Part shown: positions 3,001 through 64,000 of the stretch, piece after piece | Position numbering within the stretch: position 1 is the first letter of the stretch | How the letters are laid out: every line of letters starts with the position of its first letter | NCBI RefSeq assembly: GCF_000315625.1 | Contig: NW_005434604.1 | Span: 366,791 to 430,790, forward strand | From: Guillardia theta CCMP2712 | Lineage: Eukaryota > Protista > Cryptophyta | Direction of reading: 5' to 3' | DNA: 64,000 bases | Made by a program: the position numbers and the translations under genes | The notes under the pieces: generated by a model | Databases searched by the model: none | Told to the model about the DNA's origin: nothing | What the model saw: only the letters and a program-made list of their open reading frames with translations

Positions 3001-3873
3001 CAGGTACTCTTCGCTGGTCTGATTCACAGTAGCGATACCGGAGTAAACGCACCCTCTCTCTGGACGATCTCAAGCTCTCAGCGCGTCCTCCTCCCTCTCG
3101 CACCCTCACCGGCCTTGCCGAACATGGTCGCATACCCCTCAACAGAGTTCGGAAGCCACGTCAGTAGTAGCACCCTGTCGGCCACTCCGTTCAATCTGAT
3201 CGACTCGTCCAGGCTCTCTGCCAGCTCTGCGTCATACTCAATGGTCGTTACCCGCGCTCCTCTCCGTGCAGCCTGTAAGAAGAGCATGAGAGACAACGGA
3301 GGAGGAGGACGAGCAGGAGAAGCTCTACCGTCAGCGTGAAAACTCCTGTCTCCCCACCAATGTCCAGGACATGATCAGAAGGTTTGAGCTCCGAGAGGAG
3401 AAACGTTGCAAGCTGACCCTCTTGCTCTCCATAGAAGAGGCGAGAGTACTGAGCCTGTCATGCCCTCAGCATGCAACATCTCCTTCCTCTTCGCTCGTCA
3501 CCTCGCTCGATAGTCGCACACTGAGTGGGGCTCCCCTTCGATCCGTAGTGGCGTTGTTGTAGAACCGCGTGTCTTGCGCTATCATGGGGAAGCTGACCTT
3601 CTCCTCCTGCTTCTCCTTCTCTCTTCCTCCCTCCCTGCTCTGCTGTCTACCTGCCTGCTCGCCCGCCAAAATTTCATTATGAAGAAGACCACAAGGCATG
3701 CTTCATACCTTATCCATCCCTTTGTTCGCCGCCTTCTTCTTCCCTGCTACCACATGGAGGAGGAGGAAGAGGGAGAGCAGCACTAGACAGGCTTTGATCC
3801 ATATTCCTCCTCTCCTCTCCCTCCTTTACCTCCCTCCCCTCCCCTCTCTCCCTCCCTCCACGCTTCCCTGCAT
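1..3873 (-). CDS. Multi-exon, multi-domain glycan-modifying protein: signal anchor + FkbM-type methyltransferase + DUF1647-like GT domain + GT2/GT-A-like domain; runs off the left edge; start approximate
   Basis: Manual minus-strand translation gives WIKACLVLLSLFLLLHVVAG (~3800-3740) and SDHVLDIGGETGVFTLT|AARRGARVTTIEYD...IVRISAEGAEEF|VLEGMHALL (FkbM motifs). One open exon ~2294-141 then contains LVSAVSKDYFDRLRNLIGSVH...VVIFDMGL...YAWKMPLI...ILYLDSS (DUF1647-like) and YAKNVGMRRARGKFVLVTNGDILL (GT-A). Confidence 0.8.
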
Positions 3874-4187
3874 TACGCCATGGATCCCAGACTTCCACCC
3901 CCTTTCGCGACCGGAACCACCCCTACCCGCTGAAGCTTCCTGCAGAGACGCAATGGCGATCAGCTAACTAAGTTTTGCTTCCTCGTTCACTGCCTGCTCC
4001 GCCAGCCCTCCCCCTCCCCCTCTTCCTCTTCTTCTTCTCATCTCGTGCTTGCTCTTGTCCTCTTCTTCTTCTCATCTCTTGCTTGCTCTTGTCCTCTCCC
4101 TCATCGTCTCGTCTCTCGGACCTTCTCTCCCTCGATTGCCTCAAGTGCTTTCCCCCAGTTCTCTCCCCCATCCTCCTCCTCGTCGTC

Positions 4188-58859: not shown

Positions 58860-60603
58860 CTAGTTGCCGTCATACCACAACCGGTGTAACAGCCAGAGCC
58901 TTGCAGACATCCTTTGACCTGTCAAAATTCTTATTCGTTTGCTTAAAATTGGCTCACTGTCAAGAATCAAATCATACATATTCCATGTAGAAGGATGAAA
59001 CGGCCATCGTCCATCAGTCGGTTCTTTGAGAGGTTGTAACCTGACTGGTAGAGCAGGAGCAACATCAATCCGATTTGATCCAGAAACATCACTTCTTGGT
59101 TGGAAAATTGCCTGGACATGACATTTTACAAGAATGTTACAGTCCTCAGATGACATTCCTTTGTTTGCTTCGACTTCAAGGCAATGTGCTTGTTTAACTT
59201 GGCTCTGTATCGCAGCCATGCCCGATTATTGCGTTCTCTAGATCAATATCAATCCGCAAGGATATAAGAATAGACATCCCACTCGATTTGTAGAATACTT
59301 GGATCTGGGATTGAGAGAGCGCGTTTTTTTATGTTGATTGCAGTGTCTTGGTCGATGATCTATATACTATGAAGGAAACCAATCATTTAAATGCAAACAT
59401 TCACCGGGTCATTGTTATATATATTTGTTGATGCATCAACAAAAGCGATATCCATGTTGCACATAGCTGTAGCTGTGCAACCCGTTGGCTTTCGATCAAG
59501 AACTGACTCTGGGTCTATGCAAGCTCCACGATATCTAAGCACCGACGTCAAAGGAGAATACAAACACCGTGTCAAATACAAAATGCCAATTTCAACTTCA
59601 TATTCGATACTAAGCTCGTCATCATTGAGATGTCGATGAGGCCGAAACGGAGTGGGAAGTTTACGTGCTTGCTTTTCAGCCTTTTGTGTTGTTATTCGAC
59701 ACAGCAAGTGCAACACAGTTTTGCACCTGATCATCGATAATTCGCTTAGTAATCTTGCAATGACCCGTCATAATGTATATCAGGTTTGAATTGGAAACTC
59801 CTTCATCTATGATTCTCTAGAATGCACAAGTAACGTCAGAACATTCTTTTTCAGCATCAACGGATTACCTCGCCCATCTTATATCGCTTCAATTGCATGT
59901 TTCCGACTAAGATATTTTTGGTTCGCTCATTCCAGTTGTCAAAATCTCGTATTTCATTGACAAACGTTTCTAATCTTGATCGTTCCCTCAGGTGTATAGG
60001 TTTCAAATATCGATCATATTCTGATTTGTTTACTCTAAGAAGCTTGGAGGTGACATCTGCATACACAGATGCTGTCCGAATTGAGTTATTTTGGAGCAAG
60101 GCAACGTCTCCAAAGCCTTCTTGTGACAAAATATCTTTGATGTAGCCGCGGTCGTTTCGAAACACTTTCAGAGTGCCATCGAGAACTAGATACCAAGCAT
60201 CTCCAACATCACCTTCCCTCACAACACACTCTCCGGGCTGAGCAATTTGAAGCATTGCAAATCGTGCGATATCTGCTTGTCCTTCGATAGAAACATGGAC
60301 TTTGGAAACTGCGTCGATTTTCTTAATTTCTCTCCGAACAATATCTATTTCATCCGCTCTACGCTGCCAAGGAGATTTCTTCAATATTTCTTCTATCTTT
60401 CCAATATTTACCAGTATACTCTCTACATTTTTGGGCCTACGGAGAATGAGCTCTTCTGATTCTCCTTCTTTTCCTTCATGCTTTGATTTGTACATGGACA
60501 TGACTCTTTGGAGCTCTTTCCTCCCAACCCCAAACTCTGGGAGTACCTCAATCTCCACTGGTGCATTGCGCACCCATATCTGTGTTCTCTGCTTCGTCTT
60601 CAT
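58860..60603 (-). CDS. Cyclic nucleotide-binding domain protein; multi-exon
   Basis: GECVVREGDVGDAWYLVLDGTLKV...GFGDVALLQNNSIRTASVYA cNMP signature. A second cNMP-like domain starts LKRYKMGEVI. Confidence 0.88.
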
Positions 60604-60951
60604 TCAGTCGTTGCGAAACAACTCGCCATCTTGCACGGCATCAAACAAATGTCGGCGCGCCCTCCAATCAGCTATCGCGAAGGTCCAACCAACCGCAGAT
60701 CGGTCGTTGCGCCATGCACGCCGGCCCGGCGCAGACCGACTCTCGTCGAACGCCGGGCCCGCCGCCGTAGTGACGTTAAACTGTCTGTAATAATATCTGC
60801 AATCAGTGTGTTACAAGTTCAACGAATTTCAATTCCATAACTTTAACCGGCGCAATGCCGGGGCAACCGCCGGCGCCGGCAAAGTGTTTTGAATAATTCT
60901 ACCTAATCTCTTAATTATGGTCAGTGTGAGGGGTCATGTATAGATAATTCA

Positions 60952-60968
60952 AGGGTTTAGGGTTTAGG
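60952..60968 (+). repeat. Short telomeric tract (AGGGTTT)2AGG
   Basis: Direct reading. Confidence 0.75.
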
Positions 60969-61352
60969 AGGAGGCCGGGCCGGGCTCTCGGGCCCGGTCC
61001 GGACAGAGGCCCGGGGGAAGGGACGTGAGTCCCAGAGACCCATCCACTTGAACCCACCTGCCACCTCATCCATCATCCACTCACTGGCCGAAGGCCGGCC
61101 GAGACCGCCAAGGTGTGTCGGAGCCGAGGAAGCAACACAAGTAAAGCGCGGACGACCCAGGCCAAGGCCGGCGGAGGAAACTCCACTGGCGGAGGCCTGG
61201 GAAGACCACGAAGTATATCAGAGGAGGGAGAAGAGCAGAACTTACTGAGCACGGTCACGAGATCCCTGTTATGTTAGACTAGAATAGAGCAAGATGATAA
61301 CAAGCCATGCAACCTTCCTAGCATTCTGATAAACTCAACTACTACTACTACT
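60969..61352 (+). mobile_element. 5'-truncated, divergent relative of the telomeric element (3' end with (ACT)5 tail)
   Basis: Terminal 46 nt are colinear with 63331-63376; flanked by telomeric repeats on both sides. Confidence 0.7.
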
Positions 61353-61387
61353 AGGGTTTAAGGTTTATGGTTTAGGGTTTATGGTTT
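61353..61387 (+). repeat. Five telomeric heptamers, three degenerate
   Basis: AGGGTTT AAGGTTT ATGGTTT AGGGTTT ATGGTTT. Confidence 0.9.
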
Positions 61388-61580
61388 AGAGGCGCCGTTA
61401 TTTTCGGCAGCATGGCTCCTCGCCAGGTGTAGGGGAAGCCGCCAGGGCGCCAAGGAAGCTGCAAGCGAGAGGTTTGTATACTTCAAACAGCTTTCTAAAT
61501 ATGGTTCTTCAGTATGATGAAAGTGTTCGCAACATGCTGTATCCGAGAGATCATGCCAATACCGGCGGCAGGGCGAGCTT

Positions 61581-62804
61581 GTGGATGCCGCGGTCCTCGA
61601 AGCTGATCTTGTCGAGAGGGTGAAAACATGTCAGCAGGCACGACGGGAGCTTCTACAAGAAGCGATGACTGGATGGAGTGACGCATCCAGAGAGGTCAAC
61701 CATGAAGAGAAGCTGAAGAAGAAATTTGAAGAGATCGGACTGATCGTAGACTCAGTGCAAGAGAGTAAAGCGATCATGTGGAAGGCTCCGTATAGATCCG
61801 AGATAGCGAGTGCTGATGAGATCCCGGTGACTGTTTCCTTCCTCCGCAATGCACAAGCGGAGAAGCTCTGGCAGGGAAGAGAGGACTTCGCGATCGATGG
61901 TCGCAAGTTCACAGCTGTACATGCGAGCATCGTGCACGATCGATCTTTCAAGATTCGAGCCAAGAGAGGACCCTGGGGCAAAGGGGGCAGCTTGGCAGAG
62001 CTGACTCACCTGCTAACCTTGGGCGGCATGACAACAGCCGAAATTGCTGACGTCTACCGCTATCAGCTGCTGCGCCAGTCCCTTGCAGCGGTCCAACTCC
62101 AGCCGCTGGCAGGCATGCTGGTCGCTGGGGCGCCAGGCCAGCAAGTCCACAAAGGCTTAGGTCAGAAAGGCTTCGTCGCTGTAGGGGCCCAAGTCATCTG
62201 GAGACAGAGGGAGGTGGAGTGGATCGTGTCCTCGAGCTGCCCAGAGGCGAATGATACAGCATTTCGAGCTTTCCGAGAGAGCGAAGCGATGGAGGGAGTA
62301 CACCTGACTCTGTTCAGCGAGGACCCGAAGATCAGAGAGGCGCTCGCAGTCGAGTTGACAGCCGATCGCTTTGTCTCTAGGAATAAGTTGAAGAAGGCAT
62401 CAATCAAGACTGCAGAAGAAGGCAGGCGGCAAGGACGACAAGGCGATCAAGATCCGATCATCAGGTCGACGGCGGCATCTGGTCGCTTCACGAGGAAGGA
62501 GATGGAGGGGCTGTGCAACGGCGGCAACACGTCCATCGCAAGAGTCAAGAGAGTCTTGTTGGAGATCGCTAACAGGCTCGAGATCAAAGTGGAAGGCATC
62601 GACATGGAGGAGGATTTGAACACCAAGTCCTGGAACGGGTCCAAGCTATGCATCCTCCTCGGCTCCACGGAGGATGCTCGACGCATGATGAAGGAGCTGC
62701 CCTTCTCTCTAGAAGGCGCAGCAACCAAGCTCGAAGCAGTCGGCTTCGACATGCTGTGGACCTCAAGGAGACGAGGAGACACGACTAACAGAGAACAAGC
62801 ATGA
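61581..62804 (+). CDS. 407-aa ORF1-like protein with RRM-like segments (true start probably upstream)
   Basis: Long uninterrupted ORF. EEKLKKKFEEIGLIVDSV...VTVSFLRNAQAEKLW...FAIDGRKFTAV and LCILLGSTEDARRMMKEL resemble RRM elements; no RT motifs seen. Confidence 0.7.
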   Translation: MDAAVLEADLVERVKTCQQARRELLQEAMTGWSDASREVNHEEKLKKKFEEIGLIVDSVQESKAIMWKAPYRSEIASADEIPVTVSFLRNAQAEKLWQGREDFAIDGRKFTAVHASIVHDRSFKIRAKRGPWGKGGSLAELTHLLTLGGMTTAEIADVYRYQLLRQSLAAVQLQPLAGMLVAGAPGQQVHKGLGQKGFVAVGAQVIWRQREVEWIVSSSCPEANDTAFRAFRESEAMEGVHLTLFSEDPKIREALAVELTADRFVSRNKLKKASIKTAEEGRRQGRQGDQDPIIRSTAASGRFTRKEMEGLCNGGNTSIARVKRVLLEIANRLEIKVEGIDMEEDLNTKSWNGSKLCILLGSTEDARRMMKELPFSLEGAATKLEAVGFDMLWTSRRRGDTTNREQA

Positions 62805-63094
62805 AGGATATAAGATGGTTGGAAGATGACTGGGTAAAGATCAACGAGGAAGGATCAAAAGGGAAGCCTCAAAAGCAAGCAACCAGGATCAGCATGGCAG
62901 GGAAGGGGCAAGGACACAGAAGACAGATGGAAGACGACAGGGCAACGGTCAACGAGGACAGACCGAAGGGGAAGCCTCACAGGCGAAAAACAACCAACAT
63001 GGCAAGGAAGGGGCAAGGACACAGGAGACAGATGGATGACGACAGGGGAAAGGGCAACGAGGACAGACCGATGGGGAAGCTTCACAAGCGGTAG
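62801..63094 (+). CDS. 97-aa basic ORF made of ~35-aa (105-bp) repeats, overlapping ORF1 stop (ATGA)
   Basis: GATGG.. repeat starts at 62926 and 63031. Confidence 0.4.
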   Translation: MKDIRWLEDDWVKINEEGSKGKPQKQATRISMAGKGQGHRRQMEDDRATVNEDRPKGKPHRRKTTNMARKGQGHRRQMDDDRGKGNEDRPMGKLHKR

Positions 63095-63376
63095 GCAGGG
63101 AAGGGACATGGACTTAGCGCAAAAAATAGAAAGGTGGACGGTTACACTGAAACCGTCAACCCGGGCCCGGAGGAGATACGGCACCGGCGGCTCGGAACGG
63201 AGGACTATGGAAACAACAGAAACAGCGGAACAGCGATAGAACTCTGGATGCCACAACGGGCCATCCAAGAAGGGCCGCTCTGCCAAGCGTGAGAACCCAT
63301 TTAGACTAGACTAGACCGGGAAGGTACCCGATGCGACTATTCTAGCATTCCAATAAAATCGACTACTACTACTACT

Positions 63377-63887
63377 AGGGTTTAGGGTTTAGGGTTTAGG
63401 GTTTTAGGGTTTAGGGTTTAGGGTTTAGGGTTTAGGGTTTAGGGTTTAGGGTTTAGGGTTTAGGGTTTAGGGTTTAGGGTTTAGGGTTTAGGGTTTAGGG
63501 TTTAGGGTTTAGGGTTTAGGGTTTAGGGTTTAGGGTTTAGGGTTTAGGGTTTAGGGTTTAGGGTTTAGGGTTTAGGGTTTAGGGTTTAGGGTTTAGGGTT
63601 TAGGGTTTAGGGTTTAGGGTTTAGGGTTTAGGGTTTAGGGTTTAGGGTTTAGGGTTTAGGGTTTAGGGTTTAGGGTTTAGGGTTTAGGGTTTAGGGTTTA
63701 GGGTTTAGGGTTTAGGGTTTAGGGTTTAGGGTTTAGGGTTTAGGGTTTAGGGTTTAGGGTTTAGGGTTTAGGGTTTAGGGTTTAGGGTTTAGGGTTTAGG
63801 GTTTAGGGTTTAGGGTTTAGGGTTTAGGGTTTAGGGTTTAGGGTTTAGGGTTTAGGGTTTAGGGTTTAGGGTTTAGGGTTTAGGGTT
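63377..63887 (+). repeat. Telomeric array (TTTAGGG)~73
   Basis: 511 bp, pure except one TTTT variant near 63402. Confidence 0.99.
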
Positions 63888-64000
63888 ATTTTCGGCAGCA
63901 TGGCTCCTCGCCAGGTGTAGGGGAAGCCGCCAGGGCGCCAAGGAAGCTGCAAGCGAGAGGTTTGTATACTTCAAACAGCTTTCTAAATATGGTTCTTCAG
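63885..64000 (+). mobile_element. 5' end of the next copy of the telomere-embedded element (cut by window edge)
   Basis: Identical to 61397-61512. Confidence 0.9.

Follow-up and report, generated by a model that had tools for sequence, protein, structure and literature searches.

Telomere-embedded retroelements at a chromosome end of Guillardia theta and their putative Dualen-type master element

Introduction

How does a chromosome end come to consist of retroelements and telomere repeats in alternation? The question is raised by a 64,000-nt stretch of the cryptophyte Guillardia theta CCMP2712 (contig NW_005434604.1; hereafter the window), the distal part of which holds a 0.38-kb non-coding element, a 2.0-kb element, and the beginning of a further copy of the latter, all embedded head-to-tail in TTTAGGG-type repeats. 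We propose that this is a telomerase-type TTTAGGG end that has been serially invaded by a telomere-repeat-specific non-LTR (long terminal repeat) retrotransposon system, composed of an autonomous master element and non-autonomous riders, and we assign this reading a probability of roughly 85%.

Results

TTTAGGG-type repeats occur in the window on the + strand only, from 60952 on (73 matches in a motif scan of the 64 kb against 0.01 expected). Because the G-rich strand of these repeats has its 3' end directed at the contig end, the polarity is that of a true chromosome tip. The succession of telomere tract, element, (ACT)5, heptamers, 2.0-kb element, and about 73 further heptamers that had been described in the initial annotation is present, with coordinates that we corrected by reading, Tandem Repeats Finder (TRF), and the motif scan (Table 1). 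Three of the five heptamers in the tract at 61353-61389 are variants (AAGGTTT, ATGGTTT). The third element had been called identical to the second, and it does match in 113 of 113 nt up to the contig end; these nucleotides (63888-64000) correspond to positions 8-123 of the 2.0-kb element, with a boundary that is ambiguous by a 3-nt GTT overlap (63885-63887). The coding strand equals the G-rich strand in every copy seen, as had been noted.

Both 3' junctions visible in the window read (ACT)5/AGGGTTT, exactly as annotated. The 5' junctions had been placed after GGTT(T), implying a register TTT^AGGG, and here the annotation has to be revised. The window junctions read TTTAGG/AGGAGG for the short element, TTTAG/AGGCGCC for the 2.0-kb element, and GGGTT/ATTTTCGG for the third copy. 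Among 44 tract ends that precede an element head, TTTAGG (21), TTTAG (10), and TTTAGGG (6) together account for 37. The putative target-site duplication reads AG(G) and is defined only modulo 7 in the heptamer array.

These junctions are not a peculiarity of one locus. The genome assembly (87.1 Mb in 669 contigs) was searched, and junction statistics were drawn from about 150 kb of loci together with pattern listings. A 16-nt 3' module occurs at 156 sites genome-wide and at none in a reversed control, and at least 40 loci, all on the minus strand at contig starts or on the plus strand at contig ends, match the 2.0-kb element, which disposes of a segmental duplication confined to this locus. 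The repeat TAGGGTTT lies within 40 nt of the 3' end at 57 of the first 65 listed sites (about 88%), and at least one of the remaining eight is cut by a contig end. Where contig extent is known, 62 of 68 sites lie no more than 40 kb from the end to which they point, and 56 of 68 no more than 20 kb. The prediction that the elements would be followed by AGGGTTT near chromosome ends is thus borne out.

Tracts start with (T)AGGG in 28 of 44 cases, nine of them after elements that are truncated at the 3' end. In these nine truncated elements (in loci L003, L005, L008, L010, L012, L013, and L023), AGGGTTT repeats follow directly and always in the same phase; either reverse transcription started internally at the same nick, or breaks were healed by telomerase from AGGG. 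The position of the 5' end within the head repeats differs between copies, with deep truncation in some, and the 3' module and its register are constant. Tails range from none to about ten triplets, tracts from 15 to more than 500 nt, and the order of neighbours varies, which argues for independent insertions.

The partner on which such elements would depend was sought with a Pfam RVT_1 (PF00078) search of the genome contigs. The best matches fall in open frames of 2482-2504 aa at the contig ends of C7, C15, C64, and C176, in outward orientation, with an ATCG(ACT)n tail about 3.8 kb farther downstream. The copy on C15 (Table 1) begins after telomere repeats with a head of about 30 tandem 20-nt units, which is followed by open reading frame (ORF) 1 of 701 aa. 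The stop codon TAA and 9 nt separate ORF1 from ORF2 (2500 aa), which lies in the same frame, and the element closes with a 3' untranslated region (UTR) containing 105-bp repeats, ATCG(ACT)4, and telomere repeats. The last 625 nt of the window's 2.0-kb element are 99% identical to the 3' end of the partner as found on C64 (C64:2462-3086). The initial annotation had anticipated longer relatives with the same 3' end and a reverse transcriptase (RT), and those now found carry an apurinic/apyrimidinic-type endonuclease (APE), an RT, and a restriction-like endonuclease (RLE).

The RT of the master ORF2 matches PF00078 with an E-value of 3.7e-35. Compared with solved structures only, its nearest relatives are R2 (E 1.1e-22) and L1 ORF2p (E 1.4e-18). 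An APE domain lies N-terminal to the RT (PF03372, aa 447-630, E 5.5e-8, 33.3 bits against a cut-off of 24.5). The match to a C48/Ulp1 peptidase (PF02902, E 0.004, 17.4 bits) falls below the cut-off of 20.7, and no Pfam match to RNase H was obtained in the G. theta ORF2 at E-values up to 10. The C-terminus holds a region with CCHC, AHN, PD, E, and K..KY motifs. A HMMER search with the last 422 aa yielded 105 relatives, several of which are C-termini of proteins of 1600-3900 aa, and the CCHC, PD, R, and K..Y columns are invariant in an alignment of 30 relatives; five distant relatives of this domain possess RVT_1 together with RNase_H (PF00075). The AlphaFold2 (AF2) model of the C-terminal domain (mean confidence, pLDDT, 94) finds R2 proteins first in Foldseek (E 3.5e-9 to 1.3e-5, template-modelling scores 0.61-0.72) and PD-(D/E)XK cap-snatching endonucleases next. 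A protein search with the APE-RT region returned distant matches to long interspersed nuclear elements (LINEs) only, at 22-26% identity, the names of which assign no clade. Since an APE and an RLE in one ORF are the defining trait of Dualen-type elements, the predicted domain architecture of the master is that of a Dualen-type, dual-endonuclease LINE. The earlier proposal of a site-specific non-LTR family with SART1 among its analogues stands as far as a telomere-specific LINE is concerned, with a partner of Dualen type rather than of R1/SART type. The closest metagenomic relative of the C-terminal domain is encoded on a contig of 1.6 kb, which breaks off within the 3' UTR.

One class of riders consists of ORF1-only elements. 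The usual member is 2.7 kb long, encodes a 715-aa protein, and ends in CACAT(AAT)n instead of (ACT)n. No Pfam domain, RT, or endonuclease was recognized in the protein, which is 29% identical to the master ORF1 over 682 aa (E 8e-80). The cores are 97.6-100% identical between copies (median 99.2%), and the frame is open in 27 of 29. Outside G. theta, the only matches to the protein family came from Hanusia phi (37% identity) and one dinoflagellate transcriptome; a EukProt protein labelled Heterocapsa arctica (P0013) is 100% identical to the G. theta protein over 64% of its length, for which contamination of the transcriptome with Guillardia is the likeliest explanation. An AF2 model of the ORF1 protein reaches a pLDDT of 50.8 and gives only weak Foldseek matches resembling RNA recognition motifs (E about 0.01); an RNA-binding domain is a hint, not a finding. 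At least 35 annotated G. theta "hypothetical protein" models can be explained as retrotransposon ORF1 proteins of this kind.

Three families have a small 3' module in common. Their 3' UTRs share TTTAGACTAG, about 40 variable nucleotides, CTAGCATTCYRATAAA(C/A)TC, and a triplet tail, and are otherwise unrelated. The tails are always (ACT)n or (AAT)n and never poly(A). A second G. theta RT subfamily has a diverged version of the module, seen in L014 and in an environmental contig; stretches at positions guessed from the geometry of the first family did not contain the module. The 5' heads of each family (L004-L033) consist of tandem units of 20-26 nt in variable number, and every unit has a 6-8-nt palindrome (GGCGCC, GGATCC, GCCGGC, GGGGCCCC), usually followed by a T-rich stretch. 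These units are candidate internal promoters or protein-binding repeats. A micro-element of about 75 nt lies between two telomere tracts in L014 (about 3853-3990, reverse-complement coordinates) and joins two head units (AGGATCCCTTTATCTGAGGC...) to the last ~30 nt of the module and (AAT)n, which hints that head and tail may be the sole cis requirements.

The first element of the window had been taken for a fragment. About 25 listed genomic copies span the same extent (query 2-10 to 377, 74-86% identity), so it is a full-length member of a non-coding family of about 0.4 kb. It has no ORF longer than 66 aa, ends in CTCA(ACT)5 with the triplets at 61338-61352, and has no more than its last ~28 nt in common with the autonomous and ORF1-only elements. 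Short, non-coding, and equipped with the 3' end of a LINE, the segment 60969-61352 is by its anatomy a complete rider resembling a short interspersed nuclear element (SINE). Taken together, at least two non-autonomous families (the 2.7-kb ORF1-only and the 0.4-kb non-coding elements) would ride on the master or on sister masters.

The 2.0-kb element of the window is of a different kind. Its 5' 1362 nt belong to the ORF1-only family and its 3' 625 nt to the autonomous Dualen-type element, and the sequence from 62752 on is no longer ORF1-only. Among 40 candidates scored, this locus alone spans the chimera junction, and a doubly deleted stretch of the window copy is likewise unique to it. The deletions (net 96 nt at 61624/61625 and net 120 nt at 61694/61695) are in frame, and the core is 97.2% identical to other family copies. 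The missing segments were considered as introns lost in a processed retrocopy, which we rejected since the net 96 and 120 nt are in frame and their boundaries are not GT-AG. In the 407-aa remnant ORF, the last 17 codons derive from the end of the partner's ORF2; the family ATG (61501) is out of frame with it, and the in-frame ATG has been lost. The window copies contain no RT, and a Pfam search of the remnant ORF gave no match. The earlier view of a non-autonomous element lacking RT and endonuclease is therefore upheld, with the qualification that a defective chimera is not a typical family member. The copy is apparently a dead and unique fusion of an ORF1-only element with a master 3' end. 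Such a fusion could have formed when RT started on master RNA and switched after 625 nt to ORF1-only RNA at the 3-nt microhomology, or through a microhomology deletion within an array in which an ORF1-only element preceded a master. The identical sister copy (63888-64000) could stem from a second insertion or from a tandem duplication.

Sequence data from other runs bear on the locus and on the family. The innermost junction lies within a contig of DNA run X1 (60919-61034), which speaks against a misassembly there, and no reads contradict the other junctions, although no listed contig bridges them. Raw RNA-seq reads (run X22) accumulate on 61600-61839 and carry canonical family bases and the 120-nt segment absent from the window copy, which indicates that the family is transcribed, with no reads specific to the window copy itself. 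In 22 of the X22 reads, an untemplated A-run directly follows 61783, within the ORF1-like frame and about 25 nt past AGTAAA; it may mark a premature polyadenylation site in ORF1-only transcripts.

A pattern scan of metagenome contigs revealed the same arrangement outside the G. theta assembly. The 10.7-kb contig Ga0172376_10008468 contains an ORF1-only-like 3' end (84% identity) with CACAT(AAT)1, 3.4 repeats, a full master, a diverged 3' module, (AAT)4, and 15 TTTAGGG repeats, in this order. The master encodes an ORF1 of 754 aa and an ORF2 of 2610 aa that is 44% identical to the G. theta ORF2 and has a C48 domain (E 2.9e-9, 37.5 bits), RT, a weak APE, and zf-RVT. The arrangement is therefore not an artefact of one assembly, and (AAT)n-tailed masters exist. 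Two contigs from the Joint Genome Institute (JGI) metagenomes (L060 and L061) also show the 3' module adjoining TTTAGGG, and runs X12-X18 (lake, freshwater, runoff, and aquatic metagenomes) contain about one quarter of the 31-mers of window 60900-63380. Close relatives of the elements, or Guillardia itself, seem to be present in environmental samples.

Table 1. Features of the chromosome end and of the master copy on contig C15. Coordinates are window positions unless a contig is named.
Feature	Coordinates	Strand	Basis
Unique chromosomal DNA	up to 60951
Innermost telomere remnant AGGGTTTAGGGTTTAGG, 2.4 repeats, adjoining unique DNA	60952-60968	+	sequence reading, motif scan
0.38-kb non-coding SINE-like element	60969-61352	+
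Shared 3' module of the short element: block TTAGACTAG 61274-61283, block CTAGCATTCTGATAAA 61318-61333	61274-61333	+
Five telomere heptamers and AG (AGGGTTT AAGGTTT ATGGTTT AGGGTTT ATGGTTT AG)	61353-61389	+	reading, TRF
2.0-kb element, 1987 nt, apparently chimeric, defective, and non-autonomous	61390-63376	+
Remnant ORF1-like ORF, 407 aa	61581-62804	+
Chimera junction, 3-nt overlap of ORF1-only element and autonomous 3' end	62749-62751	+
105-bp tandem repeat, 2.5 copies, in the 3' UTR, which derives from the autonomous element	62820-63090	+	TRF, comparison
Shared 3' module of the 2.0-kb element: TTTAGACTAG 63300-63309, CTAGCATTCCAATAAA 63342-63357, tail ATCG(ACT)5 63362-63376	63300-63376	+
73 TTTAGGG repeats, one of them TTTTAGGG	63377-63887	+	TRF (73.0 copies, 99% matches)
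5' end of sister copy, cut by contig end	63888-64000	+	sequence comparison
Master copy, about 10.8 kb (L032 and L033)	C15:1035717-1046525

On the proximal side of the array, a 248-aa ORF (59857-60603, - strand), by eye resembling a cyclic-nucleotide-binding domain, ends about 350 bp before the first telomere repeat, so that apparently no repeat-rich subtelomere separates the last gene from the array. A contig of run X2 (its kind guessed as RNA) covers 59869-60726, over this ORF. A contig of run X3 (organism B, 2011) tracks the window to 60948 and continues with 255 unrelated letters (CCTTGGGTATTGAAGG...); the divergence at 60948 could reflect a strain or relative with an untruncated end, or an unrelated join. 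Just internal to the array on C134 (about 168970-170118; L031, 971-2119, - strand), a 382-aa ORF with a chromodomain-like C-terminus (YLVHWKGYP...) is taken for the remnant of a Ty3/gypsy-type LTR retrotransposon.

Discussion

The fixed registers of the junctions allow a route of insertion to be proposed. The fixed 3' register points to a nick of the C-strand at CCCT^AAA by the element enzymes, and the C-strand 3' end would then prime reverse transcription at the triplet tail of the RNA. Slippage at this tail, as the variable triplet number suggests, would vary n. The fixed 5' register points to a break of the G-strand 2-3 nt (modulo 7) downstream, at TTTAG^G or TTTAGG^G. The outcome would be a sense strand continuous with the G-strand, with its 3' end toward the chromosome tip, and this outward orientation excludes priming from the G-overhang. 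With an AAUAAA located 10-25 nt before the junction, it is possible that read-through RNA ending in AGGG anneals to the nicked C-strand; annealing of read-through RNA to the target has been proposed for R1-type elements. Alternatively, reverse transcription may start without pairing, as in R2. In this scheme the C-strand would be nicked first, the two endonucleases may divide the cuts between them, and the riders would be mobilised in trans; the system may still be active.

Several points weigh against serial invasion by such a system. Transposition is deduced from sequence, and the high identity of copies could in part reflect gene conversion or recombination between chromosome ends. The AG(G) at the 5' junctions might just as well belong to the element or represent microhomology. 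Private deletions, the lack of an in-frame ATG, and a unique chimera junction set the 2.0-kb window copy apart; it may never have been mobile as such and is perhaps a deletion product formed in place. Its chimera junction (62751) is bridged by none of the listed contigs from other runs, and its private junctions are supported by none of the RNA-seq raw reads. The conserved 3' blocks can pair, but all pairs are invariant, without covariation, and given the weak energy (-2.1 kcal/mol) we do not accept the stem as a proven structure. Finally, some copies are internal or inverted (C19:810358, C31:424004, and C46:487659 on the + strand, and C72:435849 on the - strand). Another 3' end with telomere repeats (C72:438514, - strand) also lies far from a contig end or is inverted. 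Possible explanations for internal or inverted 3' ends include scaffold mis-joins, interstitial telomere tracts, and old end-to-end fusions.

The high similarity of the copies (median 99.2%), their head-to-tail arrays at many ends, and the identity of the second and third window elements over 113 nt could also be expected of a subtelomeric system like Y' of yeast, in which units of element and telomere tract spread mainly by DNA recombination (unequal crossover, break-induced replication, or gene conversion), telomerase healing creates the junctions, and retrotransposition is ancient or irrelevant. The nine 3'-truncated elements followed by AGGGTTT may in this case be healed breaks, and the chimera may be a deletion within an array. 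However, healing and recombination do not readily account for both junctions being in fixed heptamer registers, for near-identical copies that differ in tails, tract lengths, and neighbour order, or for unrelated families that have only a 3' module of about 28-45 nt in common. Long intact APE/RT/RLE ORFs persist at several ends, and the environmental relative retains the same junction logic at 44% protein identity. We therefore regard a Y'-like origin as improbable.

Addition to the very tip, as by HeT-A/TART or the endonuclease-deficient Penelope elements Athena and Coprina, would have the 3' end of the G-strand prime reverse transcription and telomerase extend the end later. Head-to-tail arrays at tips and an ORF1-only partner recalling HeT-A would suit this mechanism, but the orientation is opposite to that of G-overhang priming (the sense strand is the G-strand, and the 3' tail points to the tip), the master encodes two endonucleases, and both junctions are in register inside repeat tracts; we consider end-addition very unlikely. 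Collapsed or mis-joined repeats are scarcely credible, for although the contig ends within the third copy, short contigs of other runs break at repeats, and the chimera junction is unbridged, junctions of these types are found again at over 100 sites, spread across dozens of contigs, and in an unrelated metagenome assembly, and a contig of another DNA run spans the innermost junction.

Serial invasion by a telomere-specific master and its riders thus remains our preferred explanation. A further and decidedly tentative step, which we consider doubtful as a whole, would be that cryptophyte ends are built jointly by telomerase and a Dualen lineage, in which one endonuclease nicks CCCT^AAA and the other cuts the G-strand 2-3 nt away, with a dominant Gag-only partner that has converged on HeT-A. 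If true, this would be the first natural system in which a defined 7-nt target allows the functions of the APE and the RLE of a single LINE to be told apart. Because the target is fixed at 7 nt and both junctions are in register, the roles of the two Dualen endonucleases are directly testable here.

The known telomere-targeted LINEs come from insects (TRAS/SART), Drosophila (HeT-A/TART), Magnaporthe (MoTeR), Giardia, and Chlorella, and Dualen occupies a position intermediate between the RLE and the APE lineages of LINEs. A literature search, with Repbase and Dfam outside its scope, returned no published description of telomere-targeted Dualens or of the present system. The published cryptophyte Dualens are reconstructions from transcriptomes, their genomic target unreported, and carry C48, APE, RT, RNase H, CCHC, and RLE in ORFs of 2500-5300 aa (Lescot et al. 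2016, PMC5029228); LINE/Dualen repeats have also been reported in cryptophyte genomes (PMC12747079). The active Chlamydomonas Dualen-4b has dispersed insertion sites with duplications of median 900 bp (PMC9977147). Like the cryptophyte Dualens, the G. theta master has an APE and a C-terminal CCHC/RLE region around the RT in one ORF. Unlike the published Dualens, the G. theta system is confined to one TTTAGGG register, and it has a separate ORF1, no Pfam-detected RNase H, and ORF1-only and non-coding partners.

The sense strand of SART1 runs with the G-rich strand, as it does in the Guillardia elements. SART1 and TRAS1 of Bombyx mori (PMC7265360) also resemble them in occupying a fixed telomeric-repeat site in a telomerase-bearing genome, in arrays near the ends, and depend on recognition of the 3' UTR, as the Guillardia elements may do as well. 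SART1 belongs to the R1 clade and has an APE only and a poly(A) tail, whereas the Guillardia elements, with APE and RLE, triplet tails, and abundant non-autonomous partners, show neither the APE-only ORF2 nor the poly(A) tail of that clade.

As with HeT-A/TART/TAHRE, an abundant Gag-only element would rely on an RT-encoding relative, and head-to-tail arrays form at the ends. In Drosophila, the elements join the tip with their 3' end toward the centromere and replace telomerase; the Guillardia system, by contrast, has the opposite orientation, encodes endonucleases, and has telomerase-type repeats between copies. MoTeRs are described as CRE/SLACS-related, are not known to have an APE or an ORF1-only partner of this kind, and have a different telomere motif. 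MoTeR1 and MoTeR2 of Magnaporthe oryzae likewise combine an RLE-type element with a non-autonomous partner that shares its termini, both lodged in telomere repeats and in arrays split by short repeat tracts (PMC7367193). Like other LINEs with microsatellite tails, the Drosophila I factor also ends in a variable number of triplets, (TAA)n, instead of poly(A), a tail that is reportedly due to slippage at the initiation of reverse transcription; it lacks an RLE and any specificity for telomeres. Set beside these systems, Guillardia would add a cryptophyte, and the Dualen group, to the telomere-targeted LINEs, with what may be a three-tier parasitism of master, Gag-only rider, and non-coding rider on one 3' recognition module.

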